A stretch of 64,000 nt of DNA from Dicyema japonicum. Taxonomy: Eukaryota; Animalia; Dicyemida. The translations under genes and the position numbers were made by a program. Location of the stretch: positions 531,225 to 595,224 of the forward strand of contig RDEW01000023.1 of assembly GCA_011109175.1 (NCBI GenBank). The letters run 5' to 3'. The notes below the pieces were generated by a model that saw nothing but the letters and a program-made list of their open reading frames with translations, searched no databases and was not told where the DNA came from. This document shows positions 5,155 through 40,557 of this stretch, piece by piece; the first letter of the stretch is position 1; each line of letters starts with the position of its first letter.

Positions 5155-5435
5155 GAAAACATTCGCATAGACAGGACACACACTTTGTTTAAGTAAAGAA
5201 CAGTTAATTTTAACTAATCGTAGAACCAAGGAATGATCTTTACTTCTTTTTTTTCTTATGTGTGGGTCCTTTTTAGACTGTCCAGTTCCGCAGTGAATGT
5301 CCACTGATGACGGCGTCACTCGTCAAGCCCTTTTAGCATCGTAGATGCGTGGATCCTTCCACCAGGTGAACAGAAGCGAGAATCAAACCCGTAACCTAAG
5401 CCACTTATCCCGACACCTAACCACTATGCCACCCA
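5155..5435 (-). mobile_element. tRNA-head SINE family A copy
   Basis: Minus strand has A-box-like GGTGGCATAGTGGTTAG and B-box-like GGTTTGATTC. The body is shared with 19569-19890, 24055-24382 and 25660-25872. Confidence 0.8.
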
Positions 5436-5894: not shown

Positions 5895-6075
5895 TATCCA
5901 TTTCCCGATGTCTCGGGGAGACAAGTCCTTCAAAGAATCTCTCAAAGAAATGATCCAGTGGGGTGGGAAAAAAGCAAATATTCAGATGCCGTCTTGACAC
6001 TTGGCACCTCCTGAGACATCCAAGATTAATAAAACTTGCCGAGAAACGGTTGAATCAAACCCATGATGCATTGTT
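5895..6075 (-). mobile_element. Highly diverged family B copy
   Basis: Retains tgtctc-agg-aggtgcc-aa-gtgtc..ggcat-c-tgaa, a CCCCACTGG block and a hairpin tail like the other copies. Confidence 0.45.
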
Positions 6076-6401
6076 AGAGTATAATATCTAAACTAGCATC
6101 GATTATTTACTACCTATCCTGATTGTCACATTATTTGTCCGAAAATTAATCAATGCATGCCAATAATGCTTAAATTTAATTCCAAGTGCATTTCGTCACT
6201 TTTAATCGTACTAAAATATGTTTATTTATCGAAGTTTTAATTCCATTAAACTAAGTGTGAATGGATTTTACAAAAAAAAATCTAAAAAAGTCTTCTACTA
6301 TACTGGGATNTTAAATTTAATTCCAAGTGCATTTCGTCACTTTTAATCGTACTAAAATATGTTTATTTATCGAAGTTTTAATTCCATTAAACTAAGTGTG
6401 A

Positions 6402-9400
6402 ATGGATTTTACAAAAAAGAATCTAAAAAAGTCTTCTACTATACTGGGATATTCAGACAAACAGAAATTCGATGAAGTCATCTTTGGATACATCACACCG
6501 GATAATTTTCCAGAACAGAGACCGAACTCAGTGCGAATTTTTGTTAGTTCTACGTTCACAGGTGAGGGTATGTTGTCAGTTCTAGACACAATTGTTGAGA
6601 GGAATGCTCTGATAGAAAAAGTGTACCCAAAACTGAAAAAATACTGCAGGGAGTTCAACTTAGAATTTCAGGTATATTATAAAAACAAATTCTGAGGCCA
6701 CTGATATGCGATGGGGAATACAGAATTCATCCAGAAATGACCATTCTACGGTCAAACTCTGTCTTGATGAGTTGAAAAAGTGCATGAATCTCTCAATCGG
6801 TCCTTATTTTCTAGTAATTCAATATTTACAACAATTAAGGGTATCATCGGACAGAAATATGGATGGAGATGTTTGCCCCCAACAATCCGTCGTGAAATAT
6901 ATTCCACAATAATCGAAACGTTAGTCGAGGTTGACGTTGATGTGTCAATTCTAAACATCTGGAATCGGTTGGATACGAATTCTTCTCCAAATCTACATAT
7001 TCTCCAACCAATTGATTCGATTCTTGGTGTTTTCGTATTTCATTTACGAACAGGAGATGATGTTGATAAGTGGAACTCTGTTGAAGACGAATTAAGGAAA
7101 AAACTGATTTTTGTACTTGGCCACAGTGTGGAGCACGATAAACTTGATCAAGAGGATTTACAAGTCATCGGACCTTCTGGTGAAGTCTAATTTGCTTAGA
7201 CATAGTAACTGAAATAGAAATTATGCACGGATTGGGATATTCTGGAGACAAAAGTCTATATGCATTGATTTGCTTCAGAAATATTGAGGACATAAACGAA
7301 TACATCAATCACAAAATCACTGGTGCCTTTATCGACAAAAATGAGGATGAAGTTGACGAAGAAGCCAGCAACTATCGCTGGAGATTGAAAAAATTTCTCG
7401 AAAAAAGACTTGACAAGAGTTCATATAGCCATTTCAAGTTGAGTTGGAGAGAGTTACACGACAAAACCAGTCAGGAACATTCTAACTACATCAACAAGTT
7501 CTCTTCATATGTTGAAAAACAGGTAACCCACAATATCTAAATGAGATAATTAACTTGATAAGGAGGAACCTAAAAAAATGGAGTCCTGTCTATGAAAACG
7601 AACTTTTTCTCGAAGTCCTCCATCACTGGGTCATAGCAAAAACCAAATCCGAGATAATGACAGAAATGTCAGATGATGTTGAAAAAGTGATGACATATCT
7701 ACAAATCTCAACTACTTATCCCTTAATCATCAATCGAGATATTGGTGACAGGGGTAGCATCCTTATTTCCTACTGCATGTTGAATATGCGAGGTAAGTTT
7801 ACGGTCGTTTATAAAAAAACTGCAATTATCATCAGGTTTTTGGTTTTTGACAAATTTTAAGGTTTTGTGCAATGTCGGCAAATTCAAATACTAGTTATGA
7901 GATCCTGAAAAGCATTTGTGAGCAAATTGCCTCTATTCGTNCCTTATTTCCTACTGCATGTTGAATATGCGAAGTAAGTTTACGGTCGTTTATAAAAAAA
8001 CTGCAATTATCATCAGGTTTTTGGTTTTTGACAAATTTTAAGGTTTTGTGCAATGTCGGCAAATTCAAATACTAGTTATGAGATCCTGAAAAGTATTTGT
8101 GAGCAAATTGCCTCTATTCGTGGAAATGACTATCAAGTATTGTCAGAAGAGCCTACTTTCCTAATCGATTACCTTAATGATGTCTTTCAGTTTGGAATAC
8201 CCGACATCAATCTGCTAATATGTATTTGTAAAATCGACAAATTGGAGGCTGATGAGGATTGCCAATTCAGTCAGTGGCTGACTCCGAGTCTCCACGAAAA
8301 CGTGAAAATAATCATTTCTACTTGTGATGTTAATAAAAACCTCGACTGGCTTGTTGAAGATCGGAATGTTCATTATCTTTCAACAAAAACTTCCAAGTAT
8401 TCGTTAAAATTAATAAAAACTTTGTTGGACAAAAATGATAGATATTTGACATTCGAGCAGTGGAAAATTGTTGAAAAAATCGCCAACGATTGCCCATTAA
8501 CACTTCACTGTAAATTAATTGTCGAAGAAATCAGGATTTGGAAATCTTACGACGACTGCAAAAACCTTGTTCTACAGAATACAATCTTTGGTTCAGTAAA
8601 ATCTCTTTTCAGACGTCTGGAAGAGAAACATGGGGAACTCCTAACCAAGCACTTCCTTTGCTACATCACAATTTCTAAAACAGGGTTTACTAGGTTTGAT
8701 TTTGTTGAAGTACTCCTTAGAGGTGAATTAGAAGACATTTTTTCGATTGATGACAAAGTTCTGAAAGAAATATTCCAATTTTGGGTTCCACCAATGCACC
8801 GGATCCCCCCGGTTATATTATCAAGATTGGAGATGGATTTGACCAACTTTATTATCGAAACGAACACGAATGGATTTACCACACTTTGCTGGATGCACGA
8901 AGAGGTCGGCCACGTGGTTAGAGCTCTTTATTTTTCCGACAAGAGCCTAAAGTTAGAACTCCACAAAAATATCGCGGAATATTATGAAGGTCTGTGGAGC
9001 GGAAAAGTGATGAAATCTTTCGAGTAACAAATCTTCTAAACTCAAAGATTTTCTGATCGCCTACAAAAAAGACTGGGTCTTTCAAGTCCTAATTCTGAAG
9101 CTTGTCGCTATGTGCCCGAGCAACCACTGGAATTTGTTTACAATAACAAGAAGCAACTAAATCTACGGAAGATTGTTGAATTGTCTTACTACTTGTACAA
9201 AGCCAAATTGATGAAGTCTCTCAAAGAGAACGTTTTATCAGACTACAATTTTATAATCGCCATTACTTCCATATTTTCCGTTAAAAGAGTCGTACAAAAC
9301 TATCACTATCTTTGTAATCACGAAGACGTCAAGTTGATAATGAATGCTCTGCTAATGGGAAGTGAAGCTATCAATCATAATAATAACCTCGTGGGTATAG

Positions 9401-12400
9401 AAATTACTGGAAGATTATTACGATACTACAAATCACACAAATTGATAAAGAATTTGATTGACGAATGCGACAGAAATGCTGTGAGTTTGAATCCCTTAGT
9501 TCCCGGTTGGCAGATTCTTAATGGGCCTGGAGGAATTTGTCAACTTCAATATTCTCTTGAAAAATCAAAACTTTCAGATATAAATATATCCATTGTAGAC
9601 GGAAAACAGACGGTTTTAATGGTCAAGACTAATGGTGGAACCCTTTTGAACTCCTGGCTTCTAAGTACTTCGGAGAAACTGTCAAAGATCACGTTATCAA
9701 AAGGAAAGTTTACCCCAACCAACAACAACGATGTGTTTTTTATCACAATCACTGATACCCACGTGGTACTGATGCGTCATGATGAGATTATCCGAAATTG
9801 GTATTTTGGAGAGACGACTGTTCATGATATTACGGCTGCCACTCACAATGCAGCCATCTTTTTAAATAAATCCAACACAATTTTGGTTAACATGGGACGA
9901 CTCAAAGATGAAACTATCCCGGTTTTCTGCAAAGCGGGGAAATTCAACAAAAAGGAAACATTGTTTGTCGGACTCACTAGACGTTTTGTCTGCGTTTACT
10001 GCATGAAATTCAGAAGAATTATTTGCAACGTGGAGAACCGGGAATGCTTTTCTCTTTCTTTGAATGACGAAATTGGCAGAATTTACATGATTGGTGATAA
10101 AATTGTCCAGTATTTCGAAATTCAACAAAATTCTTCTCCGGTCAACACCCTCGTAAAAGAAGACGGTATCGAAAAGACTGTTCTATCAAACAATGGTAAT
10201 TATCAATTTATTTCAAGGAAAAATGCTGTTGATTAACTGCAAAAAATATTTATTAGTTTTTGATTCAAAAACCACTAAATTTTTGTTCAGAATCAGAGAT
10301 ATACCTGACAAAGAATTTACCGAAACGCTCTCCAACTATGAAGATGCCGGTTTTAACAGTACAGACTCATTTATAGTCGCAATCAGGTTGAAAGTAACGG
10401 ATATTGTAGGCACATATACATTTGTATGTGGAGTTCTAATAAAGGAGAATTTTTAAAGCTCATTGATACCAATGTGACTATAAGTCAGATACTGTTTTCT
10501 TCCGTGGCCAATAAAGTCGTGACACTACATTCAGATTGCAGCTTTAGAGTTTGGTGCAACTCATAGCTTAGATATGGAATCTGGCAAGTATTGATAAAGA
10601 AGGTGAAGATTCATTGGCACTTATGCGTGGAGCTGTGAAATATATTGAACTTTCTTCCGACGGAATCATAGCAGCAATTACTTCCGCTAGAACTCATCAA
10701 CCTTTGTTTAGATTGTACAACACACAAAAAAACATTCCAATGGATCTTTTGACTCAGTCAGATGACGGACGTGTTACAATCACATCAATTTCTCTTTCAA
10801 AGTCTGGAAAATACTTTTTTGTGTTTTCTCGAGACGAAAATAATCAAATGTCACTTCCATGGATTGAACTCCACGAAGTCACGCTTTGGGAGTCAGAGAC
10901 AAATAGAAAAATAGTTCATTCAATTAATGCACGAGACGCTTTGTTTGATCAATCTGAGACGTTCTCAATCACCATTATATGCCACTATTATGATCCTCAA
11001 TCTCCTTGGAATAAATCATTTATGGCCGTTATCAGGTACAGGACTCGTAACGTTTATAGAAATTTGAATAAAAAGGTAGAAGTGAAGGTTCCTCTTCCAA
11101 ATGGAGATATTATAAACAGACCTTTCGTGCTGGACAATAAAAAACTCGGGATTTTGATAGCCAAGAGAAACACTACGACCGATTTAATCACAGGAAAAAC
11201 AGAAAGCACGTTTCAGTTGAGTTTTATTTCAGTGAAAATGTGAACATTTATTTCCTACCATTGGATAACATTATGACATGGCAGAATGTAAAACCGTTGG
11301 ATATTCAAAGACTGATTCTCCAACTCCGTGGACATTACAAACCCGTCACTATACTCAAAGTGACTGGTGAAAATGTAGCTCTGGTTGTTGCAAAAACTAG
11401 AAATCTGTAAAATAATTTCATTTAGCAAGATTTAACTACGATAATAACGGAACGGTCATTCTCGCCGATAATAACCCCAAATCACTTATAATTTTCAATC
11501 CGACCAACCAGATTGTTCAAAATATCGTTCCACGTTTCCTAGAATCACAAATAAATATTGAAACAGTAAAATTTTCTAAAAACTGGAGCATAGCGGTTTC
11601 CGAAGAACTATCGGTAGTTAATTGTCATAATGCAGCTGTTCGATATAACTACAGGTGGGATTATGAGAAAAATCAACCTTGAGGATATCAATGGTCAATT
11701 TGTTCGATTAATTCTCGATGGTCAGTATTTTGTGTCCTTTAACAAATTTAACAATATTTTTCTACTCATAAGAACTAACGACTGCAAAGTATGTGGCCAA
11801 TGTAACATTGGAGCTTTTGGTACGAGCATTTGCGTCTCTTCGGACGACAGGTGGTGATTCTGGTCATTTTAAAGGACTGTTTTTGTAGGGACCAACGATG
11901 GTCGGTTAATGATGTTTGTGGTTGTCGTAGACATCCAAGATTTTTCAGAATTGCCAATCAGTTTGTACAGCCGGCAAACCACGGGAAACTTGAAAATTCA
12001 GAATTACGAGATTGAGCCGTCGTCTTCAGACTCGGACCTAAATGAGATCATCTTTAGGGAGTTTGGTATCAAGGACACGGAACCAATGAGACTTTCGAAA
12101 ACTTTTGAACCTCGATATTCTTTTATAGAAGCTGAAGAGGATTATTTTATTGAAGACCAAAAGGATGAAGTATATTTTACTGAAAAGTCCCCTTTGATTA
12201 GTGAAAATGAAGAAAATGAAACAAAACTTGTCCAGAAAGGGGTGACCTTTGAAGAAATTGAAACTAATGATGAACCTATTGAAGTCATTGATGAAGTGGA
12301 TGATCTAGAAAGTATTCGACATAGTTTGACGGAAGCTTTAACGACTCTCCCAAAACATAAACTTGACAAAAATAGACCAAAAAGCGAATATAAACAAAGA

Positions 12401-13225
12401 AATACCAAAGTTAATAAAAATAAGATTAAGAAAACGATGAAAGATCAACTCAAGGTTGACCTGTTAGTCACAAATACAAAAAAGTTGAAAATGAATGAGG
12501 ACCATAATGACTCGAAATCCTCAAAAAACGAGATCAAACAGTTAACTGAGGTCGACAATTCGGTTGACAAAGAATCGATTTATGTAAAAAAATCCGAATG
12601 TAATTCTTTCTACGATTACAGCTATGGAACGAGACTTATCGCGGATAATTTGTATGATATGATCAGCACAAAATCCCTATCTAGTTACAAGAAAGATATA
12701 GTTAAGGAAAATCACGTTCGGAATCAATATACAACTCGGAAGGAACCAACTACACAAAGTGAATCAAACGAATTTTTATTTGTAAGAAAATATCAATGCT
12801 CACTTGGTTCCAAGTCGGCAGATGTTCAGAAAAGAACAGAATTCAAACAGAAAGGTGAAAAAAGGCGACATGTTAATAGTGCAAAATTAAGACAGAAGAA
12901 TACTATTTTAGATCTTTGTTCAGCTTATTCGGCTTCATTATCGAAGGATTGTGATCAATCTCGTATGGGGATTGTTATAGATGAAAATAGTTATTTTGGA
13001 TGCAAAAGTGTCTCATCAAGTAGAAACTCAAATTTGCCAAGTGGATATCATGTGTTTCGCTACCCATTTCAGAATAATTGCAATATTTGTGTGGTTGGGA
13101 TCAAAATTAGAGCTAAATCAAGTAACGCAACAAAAAATGATAAAACTTTTAAGGAAGACTACTTAAATTTACCGAATGCATCGATCTATTTGAGGAATCG
13201 ACTTGATTACTTAAAGAAACTATGA
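6402..13225 (+). CDS. NWD1/NWD2-like DUF4062-NACHT-WD40 protein with a long low-complexity C-terminal extension; multi-exon
   Basis: SVRIFVSSTFTD..ERNAL..VYPKL..YCRE..LEFQ..DMRWG; ELED.FS.DDKVL..W.PP..R.PP; WD-like repeats after ~9.5 kb. Introns of 24-27 nt join the frames, e.g. 6562-6585, and a 24-nt intron near 11852-11875 links to the 11909-13225 ORF. Not every exon was resolved. Confidence 0.85.
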
Positions 13226-13279
13226 TTTTATTATTTTAAAATTCACTCTTTAAACTTGCATTAAATTATATACTTTCAA

Positions 13280-13590
13280 TTAACTCGGGATACACCGACA
13301 AAGAGTTAACAACCAATTAAGTGTATCCAGTTTCCACTTCTACAGAAACAGAGTCTATCCGGAATCAACATAAAGGGTAAAAGACGTCCATACTTGCAGT
13401 TGTGGAAACCCTTCCAGTGGATTGGGGAAGAGCAAATGATCCTTTTTTGTGCCAACCTGGCACTGGGCGCCACCTAGACAGGTGGATCACATGACACCAC
13501 TCTAATAGGAAGAGAGAGGAAGAACAGACGAACAAACAGAAACTTCAACCAATTAGCCACGAAGCACCACATGGCGCCACGCGGCTAACA
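13280..13590 (-). mobile_element. Family B copy 2
   Basis: Colinear and highly similar to 663-970. Confidence 0.85.
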
Positions 13591-13599
13591 TCACAGTTC

Positions 13600-13860
13600 T
13601 ACTAATTAAGTGTACCCAGTTCCCACTGTCACACAAACAGAGTCCTTCCAATGTCGACAAGTCCACTCAGAACTAGCGAAAGGGTATAAGACCTCCATTC
13701 CTAGCAAATGATCCTTTATATATATGCCTCCCTGGCATTGAGAACCACTTGAGACAGGTTGATCACATGATGCTACTCTATTAAAAAAGGAAGAGGAGGA
13801 ACAGAAGAAACAAACAAAAAATCTTCAATCAAGTGATCACATAACACCACGCGGCTAAAG
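13600..13860 (-). mobile_element. Family B copy 3 (diverged, in tandem with copy 2)
   Basis: Shares the head, GTGATC...GGATCAT and GTGG(G)AACTGG(G)TACACTTAATT blocks. Confidence 0.75.
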
Positions 13861-14961: not shown

Positions 14962-15146
14962 TTGTTTTAAAATTAATAATTTTATGGATGGGATTTTTAT
15001 TTAATAAATATAATTTTTTATTAAAAAAAATAAACATTGAAAGTACTGACTCGACGATTGACACCGTAATCAGTAAACATCTCATTGCGGAACTGGATTG
15101 TCTACAAAATGACTCACACTCAACAAAAGAAGAAAGAATTGAATAG

Positions 15147-15272
15147 CATTCTTTGGCTCTCTCTCATCGATTTGTTATGATAACTGTTCTTTACTTAAAA
15201 TAGTGTGTTCTGCCTGGGAGGAGCAACAACTAATATGGCTCTTCGTAAAGTGCAGTATTTTATTTATTTTTA
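15147..15272 (+). mobile_element. SINE family A 3' fragment
   Basis: ATAACTGTTCTTTACTTAAAAT...GCCTGGGAGGAGC..CTAATATGGCTCT matches the family A tails. Confidence 0.75.
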
Positions 15273-15289: not shown

Positions 15290-15580
15290 TCCCACTTCGC
15301 TACTCACGTGATCTTAGGCTTTGTGCCTTCTTCGAATCCTAATAGGTGTCATGTGATCCTAGTCTAATGAGATGCCAAATTCCTGATTGGCATCCAAAAA
15401 GGATCTCTCTTTCTTACTTCACTGGATAGGTTCCTACAGTTGGGGACATGAATGGAGTTGCATGGAAAAGACGCGTCTCACTTCGACCTTGTAAACTGGA
15501 TGCAACTTAATTCGAAGTTAATTAACACATAGCCTTTTCCCGATACATTTGGGGTTATTAAATAAATAAACAGGCAACTG
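15290..15580 (+). mobile_element. Family B copy 4 (diverged)
   Basis: GGTGTCATGTGATCC...GATGCC...CAAAAAGGATC core, hairpin tail and TAAATAAATAAA end. Confidence 0.7.
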
Positions 15581-15599: not shown

Positions 15600-16400
15600 A
15601 TTAACAACAACATAGAATCTATAATTCTATTTGTGCCGAGTCTGCATGATCCTCAATACTAGTCACTCCCACCCTCTCCTGTTCGATGCGAGGCTCCGCA
15701 GACTACTGAGGACTTCACCGTCCTTAGTGTTCTGTTGACTCAGGTCATTTAGGACTTCGGAAAGCGTTGTAAGCAGATGTTTCGAACAATTCTTCTATGA
15801 TGATGTTTGCTGGCATGTCTCTCTCCATTTCTAGAAGGTTACCAAACGATTTCCAGCGCGTCTTCATCATCAGTGTGCTCAGATATCCAGAGGAGTTTCT
15901 TCTGTGGAATGGTTCACCCCTTACACGCATTGGTCACTTTAATCCCAAGAGAGATCGAAGTTGCTTTCTATGAAGTGAGTCGAGCCATCGGTTTTCGAGA
16001 TTTTCCATTTGCCAGAGTTGTAAGTAAGGATCGGTTTCATGAAAACCTCGTACAACCTGAAGCAGAGTGATGGAGAGACGTCTTTAATCCATCCTTTCAT
16101 AAACATTTGCATGGTCACTGTAGATAAAAATTTCCTTCTCGGAATGTCTTCGGAGTCCTCGAGAAGGGAGCCAAGCATTATTTTCTTCCTGCATGGTTTC
16201 ATTCGCTTGATCTCGACGATATCCATTTTCGAGGTGTTCATTTTATAGAGACCATTTACCAGGCGGTCTGGTGCTACCTCCAGGAGACGTCGAAGTGCTT
16301 TTTTGTTACTTGAAACAAAGTCAACATCATCACCGTAAACAATTTCCATAATATCGTCACTGTAATAACCCCTGAGATTTCGTAAAGCTAATTAAAGGTA
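15600..16400 (-). mobile_element. RTE-clade LINE 3' fragment
   Basis: YGDDVDFVS (YADD-like), LGSLLEDSEDIPRRK and KPILTYNSGKW, all homologous to 38596-39327. Confidence 0.8.
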
Positions 16401-16585
16401 TACAGCGAAAAAAACCGGAAAAAATTTTCAGTTTTAATCGCTAATAATCAAAAAACTCTGAAGAGTATGATCGTCTCGTATAACAAGATAACCTTTTACA
16501 GCGAAAAAAACCGGAAAAAATTTTCAGTTTTAATCGCTAATAATCAAAAAACTCTGAAGAGTATGATCGTCTCGTATAACAAGAT

Positions 16586-19390
16586 AACCTCTACGTCCAA
16601 TCCAAGAGGAATGTCTTTCTTGGACGGTCTCCCCACTGGCCTCTCTCTCCTGCCTTGATGGAAGCCCACCTAATGCTTTCCGGCGATGTGAACCCCAATC
16701 CTGGACCACGAAAACCCATTATTTTGATTCAACTAAACATAAATGGAGTGAAAGGGAAGATCCTCGAACTCAGAAAACTCTTAAAAAGGTATAATATCGA
16801 TATTTGCCTACTCCAAGAAACAAGACTGACTCCGTCTTCTTCCACTCCCGTCTTCCCAAACTATCACGTCATCAGGCGCGACCGCCCAGTTGGGCGGGGT
16901 GGTGGACTGCATACCCTTATCAAAAAAGAAATTCCGTACGCAAACGAAACTTTTGTCAACCTCAAGTCTCCCGTCGAATATATTGGTATTTCAGTCAAGA
17001 CAGCATCGGAAACATAAACATATTGAATGTGTATGTGCCACCGCCCAACTCATGCCCCAAGGAATTCAGGTTCTCCTTATCAGACATCGAAAAATCAAAA
17101 AATATGTTACTTTGTGGAGACCTAAATGCAAAGCATCCGACATGGTTCAAGAACCAACCATGCGATGACAGAAGAAACCAATTGTTATCGAATCTGGATG
17201 ACCTGATAATATTAAACAACCCTAAATTCAATACAAGGACTCCCTATAGACCGAATGACAGGACGTCGTCCCCCGATCTTACTCTTGCCTCACCAAACAT
17301 CGCAACATTAACAAAATGGACAGTACTATACGAGACCAGCAGTGACCATAATCCCGTTATGATTACGTTTGAAGAAAGAGTGTCAATTGTAAAGAAACCT
17401 GTTTTATTTACCGACTACAAAAATGTCGACTGGAAAAAGTTCTCAAATTTTGTCGACTATTATCAACTTGACTTTCATTTATCCAATTTCAACTCCATCG
17501 ATAAAGCACTACACTATTTTAATAGAGTGGCACGCGAGGGAATGAAAATTTGTATTAAAAGAAGACCACTGACCTCAAGAAAGAATTCTTCCCCCAGAGT
17601 CGATCCACTCATAAAAGAAAGAAATTACCTAAAAAGCCTCCAAAAGCAATTCTGGGAAAGAAGATTGAGAATTCGTACATTAGAAAAAGAGATCAGGAAC
17701 AATGCAAAGAAACAAGAGAAAGTTTGGAAAAACCTCATGTCCAATTTAAAGAAGCAGAACTCCCTTACAAAAACGTGGAAAACACTTAGAAGCTTTAGTA
17801 ACGCTGACAACCCGGCCACACGTGATGAAAAGAAAAACAAGATCTTCCTAAACACACTTATGAAGTACTACTCTTCCACGAGTTTCATCCCACACAAGAA
17901 ATTCGAAGGTCCATTAATCCTAGCCCTCAAACCTAAAAGAGCCACCTCTCCGATTGTCCTCTCTGTGGAGAACGTACAGAATATGGTCAAGGGTCAAAAG
18001 TCGAATTATTCTTGTGGTCCGGACGGAATTCCTGCAATAGTTTTGAAAAACATAGGCCCCTATGCTATCATGGCCCTCACAAACATTTTCAATTTTTCAA
18101 TCAACGAAAATTGTATTCCTTCTATATGGAAGCTATCAAACATACGACCAATCCTGAAACCCGGGCGACCAAAGAAATCACCAGCCTCATACAGACCAAT
18201 ATCTCTCCTATGTGTTACATCAAAACTTTTGGAAAAGCTGATTCTTGAACTAATCAAATCATACCTTCCTGATGCACCTTTTCAACACGGATTCAGAAAA
18301 AGACACTCCACAGAAACGCATCTTACATGCCTTACAAATTTCATCAAGGATGGACTAAAGCGCAAACCTCATCAGAAGTCTTCGTTATGCTCCATCTATG
18401 TAGAAAATTCTTTTAATACTGTCCCAAGAAAGCTTTTGACAAGGAAGATCTTTACGTCAAAAATTCCGAACAACCTGAAAATCTGGATCGCTAATTTCCT
18501 AAATGGAAGAAGAGGAAGAGTAACTGCTGGAAAAACTAGATCAGTGACCAAGTTCCTTCCAAATGGAGTCCCTCAAGGATCTCCACTTTCACCACATTTA
18601 TTCAACCTATTTTTGAATGATATGCCCTCCCATACCAGTGACGATACTCTGGTTTTGACATATGCGGATGATATAATCGTCGCAGTCAAAGACCAGTGCG
18701 TTAATACTGCTGTTTACCGGATACAAGCTTTATTGGACGATCTGAACTGTTGGCTCGTTAAGAACATTCTACATACAAGTCCCGAAAAGTCTTATACAAC
18801 AATTTTCACAACAAACAGAAGATTGACAAACTCCGCTCCATGTGTAACCATAAATGGAAACTCAATCCCCACGACCAACTCGGTCAAGATACTGGGCGTA
18901 ACTTACGACCCACTCTTGACCTTCAGCAAACACATCGACAACGTCATCTCTTCGGCACAACAAAGGCTAAATTTTGTTAAAACACTCCTTGGACAATAAT
19001 GGGTGTTTCAACTCAAATTTGGACTCGCTCTACGTGCAGTATATTCAACCGTCTCTAACTTACGGGTGTGCTGCATTGGGAACCAACCTATCAAACAGGA
19101 ATATATAAAAAATCAATACCTTCCAAAAAATGGCCAGTAAGGCTTTGCAAAGGTTTTCTTGGAAACCTCTAAACCCTACACCCTTTGAGGAATTAGTGAG
19201 GAAAACCGAAGCCTTACTACCCTCCAAAAAAGTTAGAAACCCCCACCCAATCCGGAAATGTGTTGGAACCCAGGAAGAACATCGAGCAAGAATAAGATGG
19301 CTACTCGAGGCGGTCAGAATCACCTGACGGCTATGTAGTTAATTAATTCGTCGGTGATTTTTGGTTTTTAATAATAATAATAATTAACAA
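16586..19390 (+). mobile_element. Near full-length single-ORF APE-RT LINE with an N-terminal 2A-like peptide (Ingi/Vingi-like architecture); frameshift at ~17010 and stop at ~18999
   Basis: LMLSGDVNPNPGP; APE motifs QLNING, LLQET, LCGDLNAKH, SSDHNP; RT motifs GVPQGSPLSP and YADD; tail ends in (TAA)n. Confidence 0.9.
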
Positions 19391-19568
19391 ACTTCTTAAT
19401 TGTTTGCTGCCGAACATCAATGGAAGCGAAATTTCTCTATCTCGTAAATTTGAAAACCATAATACCTTTTTTTCCTGGTCGACCTTCAATTTACAGTCAT
19501 GTCAGATCCATATGACTGATCTCTGGGACTTCCGTCTTTTATTGCTAATCACACGTTATCCCCTGATT

Positions 19569-20030
19569 GGTCGGGTAACGCAGTGTAACGAGTGACGGGC
19601 GAGAGAGACCTGATAACCCTAGTTCGAATCCCTCTGCTTACATTTCGGGTGAAGGGTCCACGTATCTACTATGCTTTGGCTTGACGGGTGACGCGTCATC
19701 AGTGAACATCTCACTACGGAACCAGATCGTCTATAGAGGACATACACCCAACAAAAAAAAGTGGAGAGCATTCCTTAGTTCTACGATTAATTATCATAAC
19801 TGTTCTTTACTTAAAATAAAGTGTGTGTCTTGCCTGAGCGGAACTATAGATAATATTACTCTGCGTAAAAGTACAGTTTTTAAGCGGAAGTTACAGTTGA
19901 GAGCGTCTCCATTTGTACTGGAAAGAGCATCGAGCGGAACTATAGATAATATTACTCTGCGTAAAAGTGCAGTTTTTAAGCGGAAGTTACAGCTGAGACC
20001 GTCTCCATTTGTACTGGAAAGAGCATCAGG
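19569..20030 (+). mobile_element. SINE family A copy with an 88-bp tandem duplication at the 3' end
   Basis: B box AGTTCGAATCC and conserved body; 19843-19930 is repeated at 19931-20020. Confidence 0.8.
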
Positions 20031-20199: not shown

Positions 20200-21350
20200 G
20201 GAAGTCTAATGCAGCCTAGATGAAAAAAATTTATGCACTTTGCACAAGGCAAACATCATTTTCGCGTAATGACTGGAAAAACCATGGAACCCATAAGCAA
20301 CAGCAAAGAACTCGAATTTACGAACTCTTCTAAAAATACACTTGGTAAATGGAGACTTCGAAGAAACGTCACGCATAGATATCCTTAGGTCAGAGAGCAC
20401 CAGCCCAAATACCCGACATTGTAAAACCCCCTATACCGAAGTAATAAAAGGAGGGATCATTTTTAGTTGCCGGCCAGGAATTGGGGGTCTTTGGTAATAA
20501 AAATCTAAGAATTGAAGAAGGCTGAAAAGGAAAAAAATCCTATTTTAGATGCAGACGCTATTTTTCAAAAATGATATTATTGAAGAGAGGAGTCCCACAG
20601 GTATGAATTTTGAGCCCTCTATTGTTTAATGTTCTAATGGCCGGTTTCCCGTGTCCGTCTACACCGAGTACGAGATCTCTGATATAGGCAGACGACGTGC
20701 TATTGTCTGATGTGTCTAGATCGAACATGATCTCAGAGAAGAGACTCAATGTGTACATGGAAGAGATAAAAAACTGGTGCGGTCTTCATGGGTTAAAACT
20801 GTCAGAAGAAAAATCTAGTGCAATGAGGTTCTTTGGTAGGAATGGTAAAGGAAATCGGAAAGACTTCGTATGCGGAATCAACATTGTGAGCTCCCTGAAG
20901 TATCTCGAAACAGCTTTTGAGAAATCTGAAAGCATGATGTGGATTTTAAACTCAAAAGGAAGAAAGCCCACCATGCGATATTGTGTATGAAAAAAATTGA
21001 GACTCGATACGGATATGTTTTTATTTATTTTTTCACGTACGATCATTCCATTGCTCCTTTATGGACTGGAAGGATGGTATAACATGAGCGTTTTATCTTG
21101 CTTCTTGAAAAATTGAGGAGAGCAAGGATGAAGATTGCCCTACACAAAAGGCTCGACAAGAAGCTAGATGAAGATGAAAATTTGCTAGTAATGTCGATAA
21201 GAGATGCAGCAGAAAAAAAATGGAAAACTAGCTGAAAAGAGATGCCATCACTGACTCGTATGTTGCAGCACAGAATAAACGATATAAAAGGTCTGAGAGC
21301 ACAGAGAAGATTCCAAGCGTTTTCAGGACTTGCGGCATGAGGCCAAATAA
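20200..21350 (+). mobile_element. Decayed non-LTR RT fragment
   Basis: RGVPQV*ILSPLLFNVL and *ADDVLL, with in-frame stops. Confidence 0.65.
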
Positions 21351-23650: not shown

Positions 23651-24054
23651 TTGAACGAACACAGTGAAAATATTGAGAGTCGATTTACTCATAAATTTTG
23701 GGAAACGTGTAAACAACGTTATCCTTTTTTCTCAAAAATCCAGGAAAGCGGGAGCAGTTAATTATCCAGGTGCATCTTCAGCGATACAAGCTGAAAATGG
23801 TCATTTTTGGTTTTACAAAAATAAAAGCAACGCCAGCTCGTTGAACACCAGTCAAAAAACCCTTACATTCAATTATTGATGGTTAAGAGAACTCGAGAAA
23901 TCAAAAGTGTCTAATATAGAAACGAGAAGTAAAGCTAAAGAAAGGACATTTATATCAATCAGTTATTATGAAACCCATGAGGTTATGAAGTAAACGATGG
24001 CCTGTGTATTGATAGATTCATTCAATCAAATAAGCCCAAGTATAGAAATCTATA

Positions 24055-24382
24055 ATAATAATACTGCATTTTACAAAGAGCCATATTAGCTATAGCTCCT
24101 CCCAGGCTAAACACATACTTTATCTTTAAGTAGAGAACAGTTATCATGACTAATCTTGAGAGAGAGAACAGAGGAATGTTTTCACTTATTTTTTCTTTTT
24201 GTTGGATGTGAGTCGTTTATAGATGATCCAGTTCTGTAGTGAGATGTTTACTGATGACGGCGTCACTCGTCAAGTCAAAGCATCGTAGATGCGGGAACCT
24301 ACAGCCTGAATGTACAACAGTGATTTCGAACTAGGGGCCATCAGGGCTTTTGCCGGCACTCGTTACATTACGCCACACATAG
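24055..24382 (-). mobile_element. SINE family A copy (most complete)
   Basis: A-box TGGCGTAATG, B-box AGTTCGAAAT, body, RTE-like tail and (TAT)n end. Confidence 0.85.
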
Positions 24383-25289
24383 AAATCTATATGATACGCA
24401 AAACTGGTCCGTCTAGTAACAAATCAACTGTATTTGTTGTTTCCCGAGTTTGTCAATCAATCAATATTTAAAATACGAAAAAGAATTAAAAAAGTTAATA
24501 AATACAATCCGTCCCAATAAATTACTCTCAAAGGCAAGCCTAGCCACACTTGCAGATTTTTCACAGTAAATAACTTGAATCTCTTTCATCATTTTCTTCT
24601 GTCAAAATCTAGAGCAAACAACATCCTCCAATAACATGTCCCTAGCCTCAAGTGCCATTTATGCAAAATATAATTTATGACTAATATTTATTGGATTCAA
24701 TGTTTTTGCCTTCCACTAGATAATAAAAAAACAGAACAATTTTCGTCGATTGAACTATTTTTTAAAATAATCGAATTAGATTTTATGGATAGGACAAGTG
24801 TCATTTAAGGAGTCGATTTTTATGAATGTATCATATTCTGCTTATTTGAGGTTGGAGATTTACGATTCAAAATTCTTTCATCAAAAGTACCATAAGGGTC
24901 AGCGGACCCATGATATTTCTTACATAATTGTTACATTTTTGTGGGGTAGGATTACGTCGTAGGCTTAATTTTTGTTACTAGTTAATCTTCTTTAGGAAAT
25001 CTGATCTCTCCCTTGTTATATTTATTTTTTTTATATTTATTAGTAGTGGACCCAACGAAGACTTCTCGGTCGAAGTGGAACGTATCCTTTTTAACCATCA
25101 TGTCCTTTACACGTATCTTTCATTATGTGAACCACTTTATTGGAGTAGGGAAAAGAGGGTCCTGCTTGGATGCCCAGGAATTGGCCGTCTCCTATGTGGA
25201 TCCATGATAACTATAGGAACTGAAAAAATCAAAGAGCTGAGAAGAAATCTTTCGACAACTAGGTAGCGGTGTGGAAAATCTACTTTATT

Positions 25290-25400: not shown

Positions 25401-25659
25401 GAGTGATCTCAATACTTTAGAATATCAAATCTACTTTAGAATATTAAAAGATCCTTCAGAACAAACTCAAAAAGCTTTGAACGTTAAAAATAATTCAATG
25501 GAAGAAAGTAAATCAATGGATGAAGAATTGCAGATGTCAAGTTTTTCTACTTAGAAACTATAATTAGAGCTTATTGGCAAGCAAAAAATCCATTTTAAAA
25601 GAATATGGAAACCTCATTAAATTTTATCGATGTTTATCTGATAACTGCACTTATACACA

Positions 25660-25872
25660 GAGCCATGTTAGCTCAGGCAGGACACACTTTATTTCAAAAC
25701 AGTTATTATAACTAATTGTAGATGGAGAGCTAAGGAATGCTCTTCACTTCTTTTTTTGGGTTATGTCTGGTTCCGCAGTGAAATGTTCACTGATGCGTGG
25801 AAACTTCCACCGAAATTTACAGTAGCGGGATTCGAAAAACTTGTCCATCAGGCCTCTTGCCCGGCACTCGTT
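25660..25872 (-). mobile_element. SINE family A copy with internal deletions
   Basis: Shared head, CAGTGAA...CACTG hairpin and tail. Confidence 0.75.
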
Positions 25873-34969: not shown

Positions 34970-36964
34970 TTAGAACACATAGCCCATTCCAAATTTTCTA
35001 CTATCACCCCATGCTTCGGAATTATCACCGTCATATCTCGCTCCATTAACAATGTTTATTGGTTCATGCGATAAATTTATTGTATACCCCATATTTTCAA
35101 GTTTTTTTAAAATATCTTGATTAAAATTATCTAAATTCATTTAAATAGAATGTCAACTTTCATAAATGATGTGTGGTTGGCTTAAAATGTGAATGCGAGC
35201 ATCTTCAATTGATTCTTTCAAACTCATTCCACGGAAAATTACGTTAATTAAAACATAAGCTACTCCTAAAATGAACTTCAAAAGCAAACCGGTGACTATT
35301 CTTGTCCCATTAGTCCCTCCAATACTCCACATTCCCCCAGTATCCTTATCCATAATAATAATGGGAGACATTGCAGACCGCGGTCTCCGTCCTGGTGATG
35401 GATAATTATTCTAATGAATAAATTTGAGAGCAACCGTCATATTGGGAATTTCAGTGGGAAAAGTGAAGTCATCCATTTGATCATTCAGAATTATCCCATC
35501 TTCGGTCATCAAAAACGATCCGAACCAACGGTTAATTGACCTGAATATAATAGTTCTATGGTACATGGTCATTGATACTGCCTGTCCTGTTTTGTCGACT
35601 ACGGAAATGTGAGATGTTCCAATAGTGTCATCATTAAAAGACATATCTGTTGATACAAAGCCTTCTTCGACTTGCCCCTGCATTACTGCGTTGTAAACTT
35701 TGTTAACAAATTGATCACTGCACATCATTATTATTTGAAACCTTAAAACCGTATTCAATTCTCTCTCAACTTCTGGTGAATTATCTCCAAATTTTTCTAC
35801 TCCTTTATAAACGTGGCGAAACGTCTAAAATGAGACTGATCAAACTTCTATGATTTTTCTGTATGTCTCGGCTCGCTTAAAATCCTCAGAATGAAAGTTA
35901 AACTTGTCAAGGACTTTTAAAACAACGAGAACAAAGCTTGAAATGCTTGGTGGAGGTACTGCATACAAATCCTTCCCTAAATTGATTGAGTGATAAAACC
36001 TCGAACGGATACGTGAATTGGGTCTTTGACATTTACTTCGTAGCTCTTTAGATCATTTAATGACATGATTCCCCCATGGCTTGCAACCTGAAAGGATAAT
36101 AAATTGATATACCGTTGATATTATGTTCTCAGCGAATACACCATTATAAAATGGGTCAATCCCTTCGGATGCTATTATACTCAACGTTTCTGACAATTTT
36201 TCTCGTTCCACCTCATCTTTCTCTTTCTTAAAACAGCAGTTGTTGCTTTCATATGTTGTATAAATGTTCGCAATGTTCTCATACCGTTTGAATTCCTCAT
36301 ATCTAATTTTTCTCATTGAGATGGCTACAAATGAACCATAACATATAACCCATGGAACGAGATATCCCGACTCCTTCACTGAGCTTAATTGCGTCATGAA
36401 AAAGCTTAATCCAAGGCAGCCTACATACGTAATGAATCAAATAAACTTTCCATATCGTTGATGTATCTCATATATTCCCTTCAGATATCCAGGAACTCCC
36501 ACAGATAATCCTCCCTATAATCTAAAAAAATACAGTGAACAATTTTGGACTGATTTCTGTTTTTGAAAATGTCAGGTTTGATTATCATAGGAGCTGTTTC
36601 TCTAGCATCAAACACCTTAACGTCTCCAGAACTATTTCGAACGACGATAAAAGCTCCTCTAACAATATTTAGACTATTAAACCCTCCAATTCCTGAACTC
36701 TGAGCATTAACAACCCCTATGCACAAGCTGATCGTAATGGCAGCGTCTACAGCAGATCCCCCTTCTTTTATAATGTTTTTTCCGTACACGGAACACACCG
36801 AGTCGCTACTACTAACAGATCCGTGCATCCTAGCTGACTTACAAATTAATTATTTTGATTACATTGTTCCGAATTAGGACAGTGTCAGTTATGAGTGCGA
36901 TAAAAACACACACAGCCATCGTTACAAGGAATATGACTATTAAGTGAAACTTGGTAATTATCAT
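34970..36964 (-). CDS. GGT: Gamma-glutamyltranspeptidase (type II membrane anchor), multi-exon
   Basis: N-terminal TM; GGSAVDAAI..CIGVVNAQSSGIGG; DARETAP; catalytic GTSHISVVD; NDQMDDF; RPRSAMSP; stop at 34970-34972. Confidence 0.92.
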
Positions 36965-38454: not shown

Positions 38455-39600
38455 TATTTATTTAAGCACTTCACGAGAGCCATACTAATTATAGCCCCGC
38501 ATGTGCAGCAAAAGAAACAAGGTTAGATGTCATCCTTTTCCATGCTCCCCTGTTCCTAGCCAAGGCTCTCATATTGTCCAGGTCGTCGGCATTTATTAGA
38601 TTTTTTTGATATTGACCAGGTCTTTGTGTAAGACTATTGGCAGTGTTGTTCTTGGTCTTCCACGATAGCGGCCTTCTTGACTAACATAGTATGTTTCCAT
38701 GGATATGTTAGGTGGGGATGTTAATTTTATCCTCAGCACGTGTCTGAAGAGCTTCCATCGGGATTCCAGTACTTCTAAGCTGATAGGTCTAGTGCTGCAT
38801 CTCTTATATAAAGCATTCCTCGATATTCTCGTAGGCCAAGTAGTTACTGTTATTTTTCTCAGCTGACCTCTGTGGAACGAGTCTAGTTTTTCCAAATCCG
38901 CTGATGAGGTCGCCCAAGTTCCAGCGTTATATAAAAGTACGGGTTTTATGAATGAGTCGTATAATAGGATTCTCATTTTCGTGTCTATGCCTTTTTGATT
39001 GAGCCATTGATTCTTCAGTTTATATAACGCAGCATTGGCTAGAGTTTTCCTACGTAAAATATCTTCGCTATCTCCCAAAAGTGAACCGAGTTTCTTTACT
39101 TGTCGCCACTTCTCTTCTAGGACGTTACTTATCCTTCTTATCTCTGTGAGTTCTGTTTTCTCTCTGTTCACAGTAAGAAACCATTTCCCTAGTACATCTG
39201 GTGCTTTTTCTAATAGGTTTTCCAGGACCTCTTTGTCTTCAGAAATTAGGTCTACATTGTCCGCGTAGATTACTTCTTCCGTTTTTCCTTGGTATAACGG
39301 TCTAAGTTCCCTCATAGCGGCCTCCAAATAAATTGTGAATATTAGAGGAGAAAGAGAGTCTCCTTGTGGAGTGCCCGTGTTTGTTTCAATTTTCTTTCAA
39401 AGAGGAATAGAAGAATTTATTTACCTTAACGTTGATATAATAACCAGGAACAATCATACAATATCACATAGAAGTGTAAATTCTTTAAATATTCTAGGAT
39501 TTCCAAACCAAATCTTGATTTTTAAGATAAGGGCATCAATTATAATGATGAAAAATTTAAAGTAACCAAAATTATGCAATAGTGTACTGGGTTAGCTGTC
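38455..39600 (-). mobile_element. RTE-clade LINE 3' half
   Basis: GTPQGDSLSP, YADNVD, KLGSLLGDSEDILRRK, RGRPRTTL; the 243-aa ORF is intact to its stop and is followed by the tail. Confidence 0.9.
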
Positions 39601-40557
39601 AGATCATTTATCCCTAACTTAATAGAAGCTAGAGATGCTTTTCAAATTCAAGAGACTACAGTTCCTAGTAAGACTTAGTTTTGAAATGCCCAGCAGTAAA
39701 TAGCAAGTACAATCCTTAAAAACAATAGATCTAGAAACAGATTGTTTTTCATGTGGGCAGTCTCAAGGTTCTGGAAATAATTTGTAAACTAATGAAGGCT
39801 GCGAATGATGCATATCCGAGGCATTTAGGTAAAAAAATTAGTAAACTTAATATATAATAGCTAAACAATTGGAAAAAATATTTGCTAATGGCGGAAATGA
39901 AGAAAACATCTAGTCCTTGCAGTTGTTGGAAGTCCTGCAGTGATCCTGTTTTGTACCACCCTGACACTGAGCACTACCTGAGATAGGTAGATCAGTGATG
40001 CCACTTTTGTAGAACGATGTTTGTTAATTAAGATAGCCCGGCCTCACCAATTTGTAGGAGACAACCGACTATTAAATAGAACGCGGGAAATACCAGTCGC
40101 TCTCATAGATCGGATTTGTGTTTAAGTTAGTTTATGTTGAGTTGAACGATTTTCAGGAATTAACCGTTTTCGTCGAGTCAGGGATTCTGTTCAAAGACCA
40201 CAGTGAGAATTAGGAGAAACCAACCCGATCTTTGAGAGCGATAGCTTTGCACCAGTACAGTAGGCGCTATTCTTTAGTTTGACTTCCTTGAAAACAGAGA
40301 ACCAGTTGATAACAAAATATTTGTGATTATTTTATTGCTTACTAAGACTAACATTCAATTGTCGCCGCGTGACCCAGAGATCTGTCAGGTGTATCTGCTC
40401 TGGCGCAGAACTCGAAAGGGAAATTGAAAATTTAGTACAAGAGAAGGAAAAAAAATAAAATTAATATATTTGGTAATTAAAATGTATTTTAATCATGGAT
40501 TTTTAAATAAAATAATTTTTGCCATAGTTTCAAAAATCCACTTAGTTTGATTGAAAA

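Follow-up and report, generated by a model that had tools for sequence, protein, structure and literature searches.

Does a 63-nt segment buried within a short repeat of Dicyema japonicum encode a self-cleaving ribozyme, or is it a structured RNA module of another kind? The question arises at 13436-13498 (minus strand) of a 64,000-nt stretch of genomic DNA, here called the window, for which the first-pass annotation proposed an HDV-like ribozyme conserved by covariation among five copies.

The repeat and its shared core

The window consists of AT-rich eukaryotic DNA (~36% G+C) and is rich in LINE and SINE-like repeats. The repeat that bears the focal core, here termed family B, is a SINE-like element of ~340 nt whose sense strand is the minus strand at 13255-13600. 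This copy (85-88% identity to the one at 662-973) is complete, comprising a head of ~90 nt (13509-13600), the core, a body, and a 3′ stem-loop formed by GGAUACAC and GUGUAUCC (13288-13328).

All five copies claimed in the first-pass annotation are present where they had been placed and on the strands given; a covariance model built from them scores 59-97 bits on each. The focal core (13436-13498, minus) matches this model at 96.7 bits. Its sister (817-879, minus) lies in the element at 662-973, with 88% identity across the element. A diverged core (13708-13774, minus) occupies the element at 13601-13850, which abuts the focal element head to tail, and the most diverged one (1935-2002, minus) belongs to an element at ~1830-2110. 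The fifth (15345-15407, plus) is found in an element with an unrelated upstream part, and here the sequence in common with family B is limited to the core and part of the body. In addition to these five, blastn and the covariance model revealed a sixth intact core (39940-40002, minus; hereafter the 39941 copy), which begins ~16 nt past the apparent tail of another element. At the junction of the 13708 and 13436 elements (13600/13601, minus), the tail of the upstream element is shortened; the pair may represent a nested insertion or a true tandem unit.

The covariance model also detected three degenerate relatives. One (5968-6033, minus) lies behind a tRNA-like head and has lost the 5′ strand of P1 and both strands of P2; the L3 motif, P4 region, body, and tail are present, and a competing hairpin exists. 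The other two are of the 15345 type: at 25146-25221 (minus), the UCU loop motif is gone and mismatches are found in both P1 and P2, and at 20443-20520 (minus), the 5′ half of the core is unrecognisable. The tRNA-like head, GGGTTTGATTCAACC (6040-6110, minus), stands ~25 nt ahead of the 5968-6033 core and receives no call from ARAGORN.

No segment other than the core recurs in every copy, and among the copies it is 71-79% identical. Ahead of it, the 15345, 39941, and 5968 copies show no relationship to the head of family B; the unrelated sequences that precede the core number at least three, namely the head of family B, the upstream part of the 15345 type, and the tRNA-like head of the 5968 copy. 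The 63-nt repeat is certainly genuine, and its presence in multiple copies is beyond chance. A 21-base gapped pattern retrieved no relatives outside the window from genome_contigs or viral_contigs; in a metagenome search, the same pattern gave 13 matches, all attributable to chance (best, 17.5 bits).

Several other features surround these elements. Long ORFs run from 8053 to 13225 (plus), one of them with an NWD1-like winged-helix domain, and end 30 nt before the focal SINE; the last ORF of the run (438 aa) has no detectable relative among 5.8 billion proteins. At 35153-36828 (minus), consecutive parts of gamma-glutamyltranspeptidase (Pfam PF01019) are matched by four pieces of ORF; this apparent host gene with introns lies downstream of both the 39941 element and a truncated RT fragment (38596-39327). 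A further SINE family, whose members have their 3′ part in common, is represented at 19540-19840 (plus), 5178-5430 (minus), 24054-24218 (minus), 25644-25756 (minus), and 15107-15264 (plus). It carries a clear B box, GTTCGAATCC, at ~19622-19631 in the 19540-19840 copy, and its 15107-15264 copy ends just ahead of the core-bearing 15345 element.

Comparative support for a knotted fold

The layout of the core was defined on a 91-column alignment (A2) of the six intact copies. In the focal copy (minus strand throughout), P1 is predicted to pair GGUGUC (13493-13498) with GGCGCC (13466-13471). A 2-nt joiner, J1/2 (13491-13492), leads to P2, in which GUGAUCC (13484-13490) would pair with GGAUCAU (13436-13442). 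P3 is formed by ACCU (13480-13483) and AGGU (13472-13475) and closed by the L3 loop GUCU (13476-13479); P2 continues into P3, and the 3′ strand of P3 into that of P1, with no gap. After J1/4 (13464-13465) comes the P4 hairpin (13449-13463; GUGCCA with UGGCAC), and a run of six A (13443-13448) precedes the 3′ strand of P2. Among the six intact copies, the loop motif UCU never varies.

Every helix quoted in the first-pass annotation was recovered. The 13436 copy has GGUGUC(A)/(U)GGCGCC and the 15345 copy GGUGUC/GAUGCC; most copies share GUGAUCC/GGAUCAU; and the 1935 copy combines a P2 of GUGGUU/AGUCAU with an unrelated 7-bp P4, GAUAUAA/UUAUAUC. Its copy numbering was inconsistent with its coordinates, however. 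GGUGUCA/UGGCGCC had been assigned to the second copy listed and belongs to the 13436 copy, and the copy that has no C before the A-run is 13708 rather than 13436.

An unbiased all-against-all helix search of the six-copy alignment ranked P1 (columns 11-18/37-44) first and P2 (columns 19-25/75-81) second. The two together make a pseudoknot, and the strand order P1-P2-P3-P1′-P4-P2′ that had been proposed is thus supported. RNAalifold, which draws no pseudoknots, recovered P1 and P4 unaided. Folding of single sequences selected P1 in two copies and P2 in three, as expected when a pseudoknot is squeezed into a nested model. Standard pairs fill 84-85% of the cells, versus 31-48% after the 3′ strands have been shifted by one to three columns. 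Changes on both sides were found at six pairs, among them 14-41 (G-C to A-U, two copies), 25-39 (C-G to U-A), 24-76 (C-G to U-A), and 47-65 (G-C to A-U); given the double change at 25-39, the helix borders may shift to 5 bp for P1, 5 bp for P3, and 6 bp for P2. The U-G pairs 15-40 (five of six copies) and 19-81 (four of six) can form only on the sense strand.

The copies differ considerably in what they contribute. When the substitutions of each copy were re-placed at random on the focal sequence and the retained pairs counted, random placement over all copies retained fewer pairs than observed (total P = 0.024). In the 39941 copy, 13 substitutions, nine of them in paired columns, leave all four helices intact and 22 of 23 pairs retained (P = 0.015). 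The 13708 copy carries compensatory A-U pairs in P1 and P4, and lacks a C between P4 and P2′. The 1935 copy maintains P2 through one double change and two wobble changes, has a P3 of 3 bp with a 7-nt loop, and has, in the position of P4, a perfect 7-bp hairpin of unrelated sequence. The differences between the 817 and focal cores fall at random relative to the helices (P = 0.95), consistent with young, random decay as expected of a dead insertion. In the 15345 copy, a rival 8-bp hairpin, GAUGCCAA/UUGGCAUC, occupies the 3′ strand of P1. The earlier claim of covariation therefore stands in part: compensatory change is present, but with six sequences it is modest.

Control analyses temper this picture. 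A helix-order descriptor with perfect helices found 233 loci in the window versus 179-203 in block shuffles, and the score of the focal copy was equalled in most shuffles. The HDV helix order alone is thus at chance frequency in the window. A looser scan, in which mismatches were allowed, matched almost everywhere and was discarded for this strict version. Single-sequence folding gave z-scores of -0.6 to -2.5, and the fold in any single sequence is not beyond chance. Shuffle controls matched the real alignment in 11-17 of 500 trials, a range that unconstrained related sequences can reach.

Could the core, then, be only the oldest piece common to related repeats, with no selected RNA structure at all? 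On such an account, its complementarity (for example, the GATC-containing TGATCC/GGATCA) and its few compensatory changes would be products of chance. The ~190 loci in shuffled windows that have perfect helices in order and scores equal to the focal copy agree with this, yet P1 and P2 were ranked as the top two helices by a search that had no prior layout to favor. The folding z-scores are weak and the shuffle controls indecisive, but the wobble pairs are strand-specific and the 39941 copy has kept its pairing through nine substitutions. The fold is not preserved in the 817 copy or in the three degenerate ones, and competing hairpins are available to the 15345 and 5968 copies; against this, the 1935 copy has gained a new perfect hairpin in place of P4, and the core persists behind unrelated heads. 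The last two observations favor a real structure on qualitative grounds, and chance complementarity is regarded as unlikely. Comparative support for the fold is real but modest, drawn as it is from six sequences in one window, and the probable fold of the core is a knotted RNA whose helices follow the order seen in the hepatitis delta ribozyme.

Catalytic features and position within the element

Topology alone does not make a ribozyme of the HDV type. The HDV-like family is defined by a nested double pseudoknot, scission at the first nucleotide of P1, and a core composed of L3, J4/2, and P1.1, and P2 is stacked on P3 (PMC4908430). P1.1, in which L3 forms one or two pairs with the strand that lies between P1′ and P4, sets the second pseudoknot (PMC4908430). 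The predicted fold of the family-B core has only the first of the three defining features, the nested pseudoknot. No conserved P1.1 was found across the six intact copies: a CU/AG P1.1 can be drawn for no copies but 13436 and 39941, and there only when the last pair of P3 is opened; the other four have AA or AG. In the structures of the HDV and CPEB3 ribozymes, P3 spans ~3 bp and an L3 of ~6-8 nt forms the active site, whereas four of the six copies combine a P3 of 4-6 bp with an L3 of 4-5 nt and only the 1935 copy has the 3-bp, 7-nt arrangement.

The remaining signatures are similarly irregular. A G-U wobble forms the first pair of P1 at the HDV cleavage site, although it is variable among retrotransposon members of the family. 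A conserved G-U is absent from the base of P1 in the core, where pair 11-44 is G-C in three copies, A-U in one, G-U in one, and unpaired in one. In HDV-like ribozymes, the catalytic C is unpaired and stands at the start of J4/2. The residue for which this role had been proposed, column 65, is C in three copies and covaries with column 47 as a Watson-Crick pair (G-C in two copies, A-U in three, A-C in one); it thus appears to behave as part of an ordinary closing pair of P4. An additional unpaired C follows column 65 in the 15345 and 1935 copies, and none is found in the 13708 copy.

Rfam searches of the whole window at the gathering score returned no ribozyme, tRNA, or other small-RNA family. 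When four core regions representing four subfamilies were compared with Rfam 15, including the HDV, CPEB3, and drz models, no match to a ribozyme, tRNA, or other small-RNA family was obtained at E values up to 10. The step from topology to self-cleavage thus drew no support from any computational test that was run. Other ribozyme classes were also considered. Twister variants, whose conserved blocks are GUCCCAAGC and GAGGG (PMC8501958), were ruled out because both blocks are absent from the core, and hammerhead ribozymes were ruled out by eye, with no conserved CUGANGA or GAAA.

The position of the core bears directly on cleavage. In retroelements with HDV-like ribozymes, the cleavage site at the first nucleotide of P1 is also the 5′ end of the element. 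All six intact copies of the family-B core have homologous sequence (CUAnUAGAGU or similar) over at least 10 nt directly 5′ of P1, four retain the ~100-nt head, and none of the copies in the window starts at P1. Because homologous sequence lies 5′ of P1 in every copy, the RNAs that were reverse transcribed were uncut at this position. This internal location is the strongest argument against efficient self-cleavage, and the caveats raised at the outset, namely that the canonical P1.1 is missing and that the fold sits ~100 nt inside the element, have both held. A general form of the argument was made by Kojima, who pointed out that a ribozyme within the body of a SINE would truncate it (PMC5786205).

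An active, non-canonical HDV-like ribozyme that cuts just 5′ of P1 nevertheless has points in its favor. The role of general acid would fall to the C that ends P4 or begins J4/2, and P1.1 would consist of one or two pairs between the CU of L3 and the AG before P4. Such a ribozyme could trim read-through or tandem transcripts, with head-bearing copies derived solely from the uncleaved fraction, and the head-to-tail arrangement of the 13708 and 13436 elements would suit this role. The order and sizes of the helices fit the family, as does a C ahead of an A-rich J4/2 (PMC4908430), but the L3 of most copies is short on a long P3, and the Rfam ribozyme models are uniformly negative. A single-pair P1.1 is sufficient for activity in L1TcRz (PMC3185411), and the CU/AG pairing can be drawn in two copies once the last P3 pair opens; its lack of conservation, together with the variable pair at the base of P1, speaks against the proposal. 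The invariant UCU loop counts in favor of the proposal, but the C assigned to catalysis covaries with its partner across P4 and the 13708 copy has no such C at all. HDV-like ribozymes are known in non-autonomous relatives of Ingi-clade LINEs (PMC4035085), and the LINE of this window seems to begin at the first base of a 7-bp helix; the fold of family B is internal, though, with its 5′ flank conserved in every copy. Taken together, these observations make an active, non-canonical ribozyme unlikely. Much the same holds for a bolder version, in which the core would represent a new self-cleaving variant or class that has the HDV topology and a different active site and is used across the genome, both by LINEs at their 5′ ends and by a SINE superfamily as its internal core; this, too, is considered unlikely. 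The active site of such a class would be built from a short L3 with the invariant UCU and a long A-rich J4/2, with no canonical P1.1.

A structural module of possible LINE origin

The reading preferred here, tentatively and at somewhat less than an even chance, is that the core is a conserved structural RNA module, of probable LINE derivation and without efficient self-cleavage, carried by non-autonomous retrotransposons. The 63-nt segment would be the core module common to a modular group of short elements, placed behind its various upstream parts and ahead of LINE-like 3′ stem-loop tails. Its sense strand would most likely fold as an H-type pseudoknot in which P1 pairs across the 5′ strand of P2, with the P3 hairpin at the junction and the variable P4 hairpin and A-rich linker within the long crossing strand. 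The module may have begun as a structured LINE 5′ end, of the Ingi, Vingi, or RTE type, and been captured by several short elements. Family B would then keep it for its structure, perhaps as a handle for the protein of the partner LINE. The core is unlikely to be an efficient ribozyme, since the copied RNAs all retained sequence upstream of P1. The 5968 copy lacks P1 and P2, and if its subfamily is mobile, the pseudoknot would be dispensable.

Both the LINE origin and the protein-handle role are suggested by analogy. There are documented SINEs whose bodies stem from the very 5′ ends of RTE and Vingi LINEs (PMC5786205). The 5′ RNA of R2, part of which is a pseudoknot region, is bound by the R2 protein and switches on cleavage of the second strand (bioRxiv 10.1101/2023.04.07.536001). 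In the window, the core covariance model matches neither the 5′ end of the resident LINE nor any place beyond the SINE-like copies; the proposed LINE origin therefore leans on the literature. Six LINE clades, Ingi among them, carry ribozymes at their 5′ ends.

The LINE of the window (plus strand) encodes an N-terminal 2A motif followed by APE and RT domains, and the closest relative of its ORF in the protein collection is at most 32% identical. Upstream of this 2A-LINE, a 96-bp tandem repeat or satellite (16380-16593, plus) loses register at 16593/16594. Position 16594 is also the first base of a perfect 7-bp helix, CGUCCAA (16594-16600) with UUGGACG (16620-16626), and the loop that it encloses holds UGUCU, similar to the L3 of the SINE core. 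The 2A motif, GDVNPNPGP, follows at ~16683-16709, with no ATG upstream within the stretch read. The region at 16594-16710 (plus) is a possible 5′ processing structure of the 2A-LINE, with its end set by a P1-like helix.

At the other end of the elements, the family-B tail (13288-13328, minus) has an 8-bp stem, a loop containing UUAAUU, and then TAA-rich sequence. The 3′ end of the 2A-LINE (19322-19390, plus; stem at ~19322-19357) has an 8-bp stem, CACCUGACG/CGUCGGUG, with one bulge, a loop with UUAAUUAAUU, and then TAA repeats. Compared by eye only, the two are alike in shape and unlike in stem sequence, and this likeness suggests the 2A-LINE as the mobiliser of the SINE. A tRNA origin of the core or of the family-B head received no support, as ARAGORN detected no tRNA anywhere in the window, in agreement with Rfam; strings resembling an A box and a B box were noted by eye only. 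The 13708 and 1935 copies have T6 runs in the head region, and T6 and T5 runs are found across their head and linker (13785-13860 and 2013-2100, minus); T4 runs precede the tail in the body of the 13436 and 817 copies. Such T runs inside the elements sit poorly with transcription by pol III, which would have to extend to the 3′ tail.

The core can be compared with several characterized systems. It shares the helix order P1-P2-P3-P1′-P4-P2′ with the HDV-like ribozymes of non-LTR elements (R2, RTE, and L1Tc/Ingi, together with NARTc, RIME, SIDER, and the R2 SIDEs). Further likenesses to the retrotransposon ribozymes are its length of ~63-68 nt, variable P4, A-rich joiner before P2′, and location within retrotransposon RNA. 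Unlike these ribozymes, it has neither a conserved P1.1 nor a conserved cleavage-site G-U, bears a short L3 on a longer P3, has a candidate catalytic C that is apparently paired, lies ~100 nt inside the element rather than at its 5′ end, and matches no Rfam model. Its head-middle module-LINE-like tail organization resembles that of SINEs whose bodies derive from LINE 5′ ends, such as SINE2-1_AMi and SINE2-1_ACar from Vingi and the Ceph-SINEs and WALLSI from RTE, in which the module is also swapped among families with different heads and tails (Kojima 2018, PMC5786205). In contrast to those SINEs, the core has no LINE 5′-end homologue in the window, and the family-B head is not recognisably tRNA-derived. 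The R2 5′ RNA offers a precedent for a non-catalytic, structured 5′ RNA that is recognised by the protein of its element, and thereby a reason for non-autonomous elements to retain such a module; that region differs in being ~300 nt long with three "claws," and it has no similarity to the core in sequence or fold (bioRxiv 10.1101/2023.04.07.536001). Another comparison is provided by the hammerhead, a different ribozyme class whose core motifs are absent from family B. The SINE-like Sm-alpha elements of schistosomes carry an internal hammerhead ribozyme downstream of the head, sometimes in tandem.

Why SINE superfamilies retain conserved middle domains is an open question. If the preferred reading is correct, a pseudoknot that survives the exchange of heads, tails, and even an entire hairpin would provide a concrete structural answer, and it would tie the bodies of SINEs to the structured 5′ ends of LINEs. 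Should the fold instead prove to cleave, the HDV-like family would gain a non-canonical core as well as an internal location within a SINE, raising the further question of how the element avoids self-truncation.
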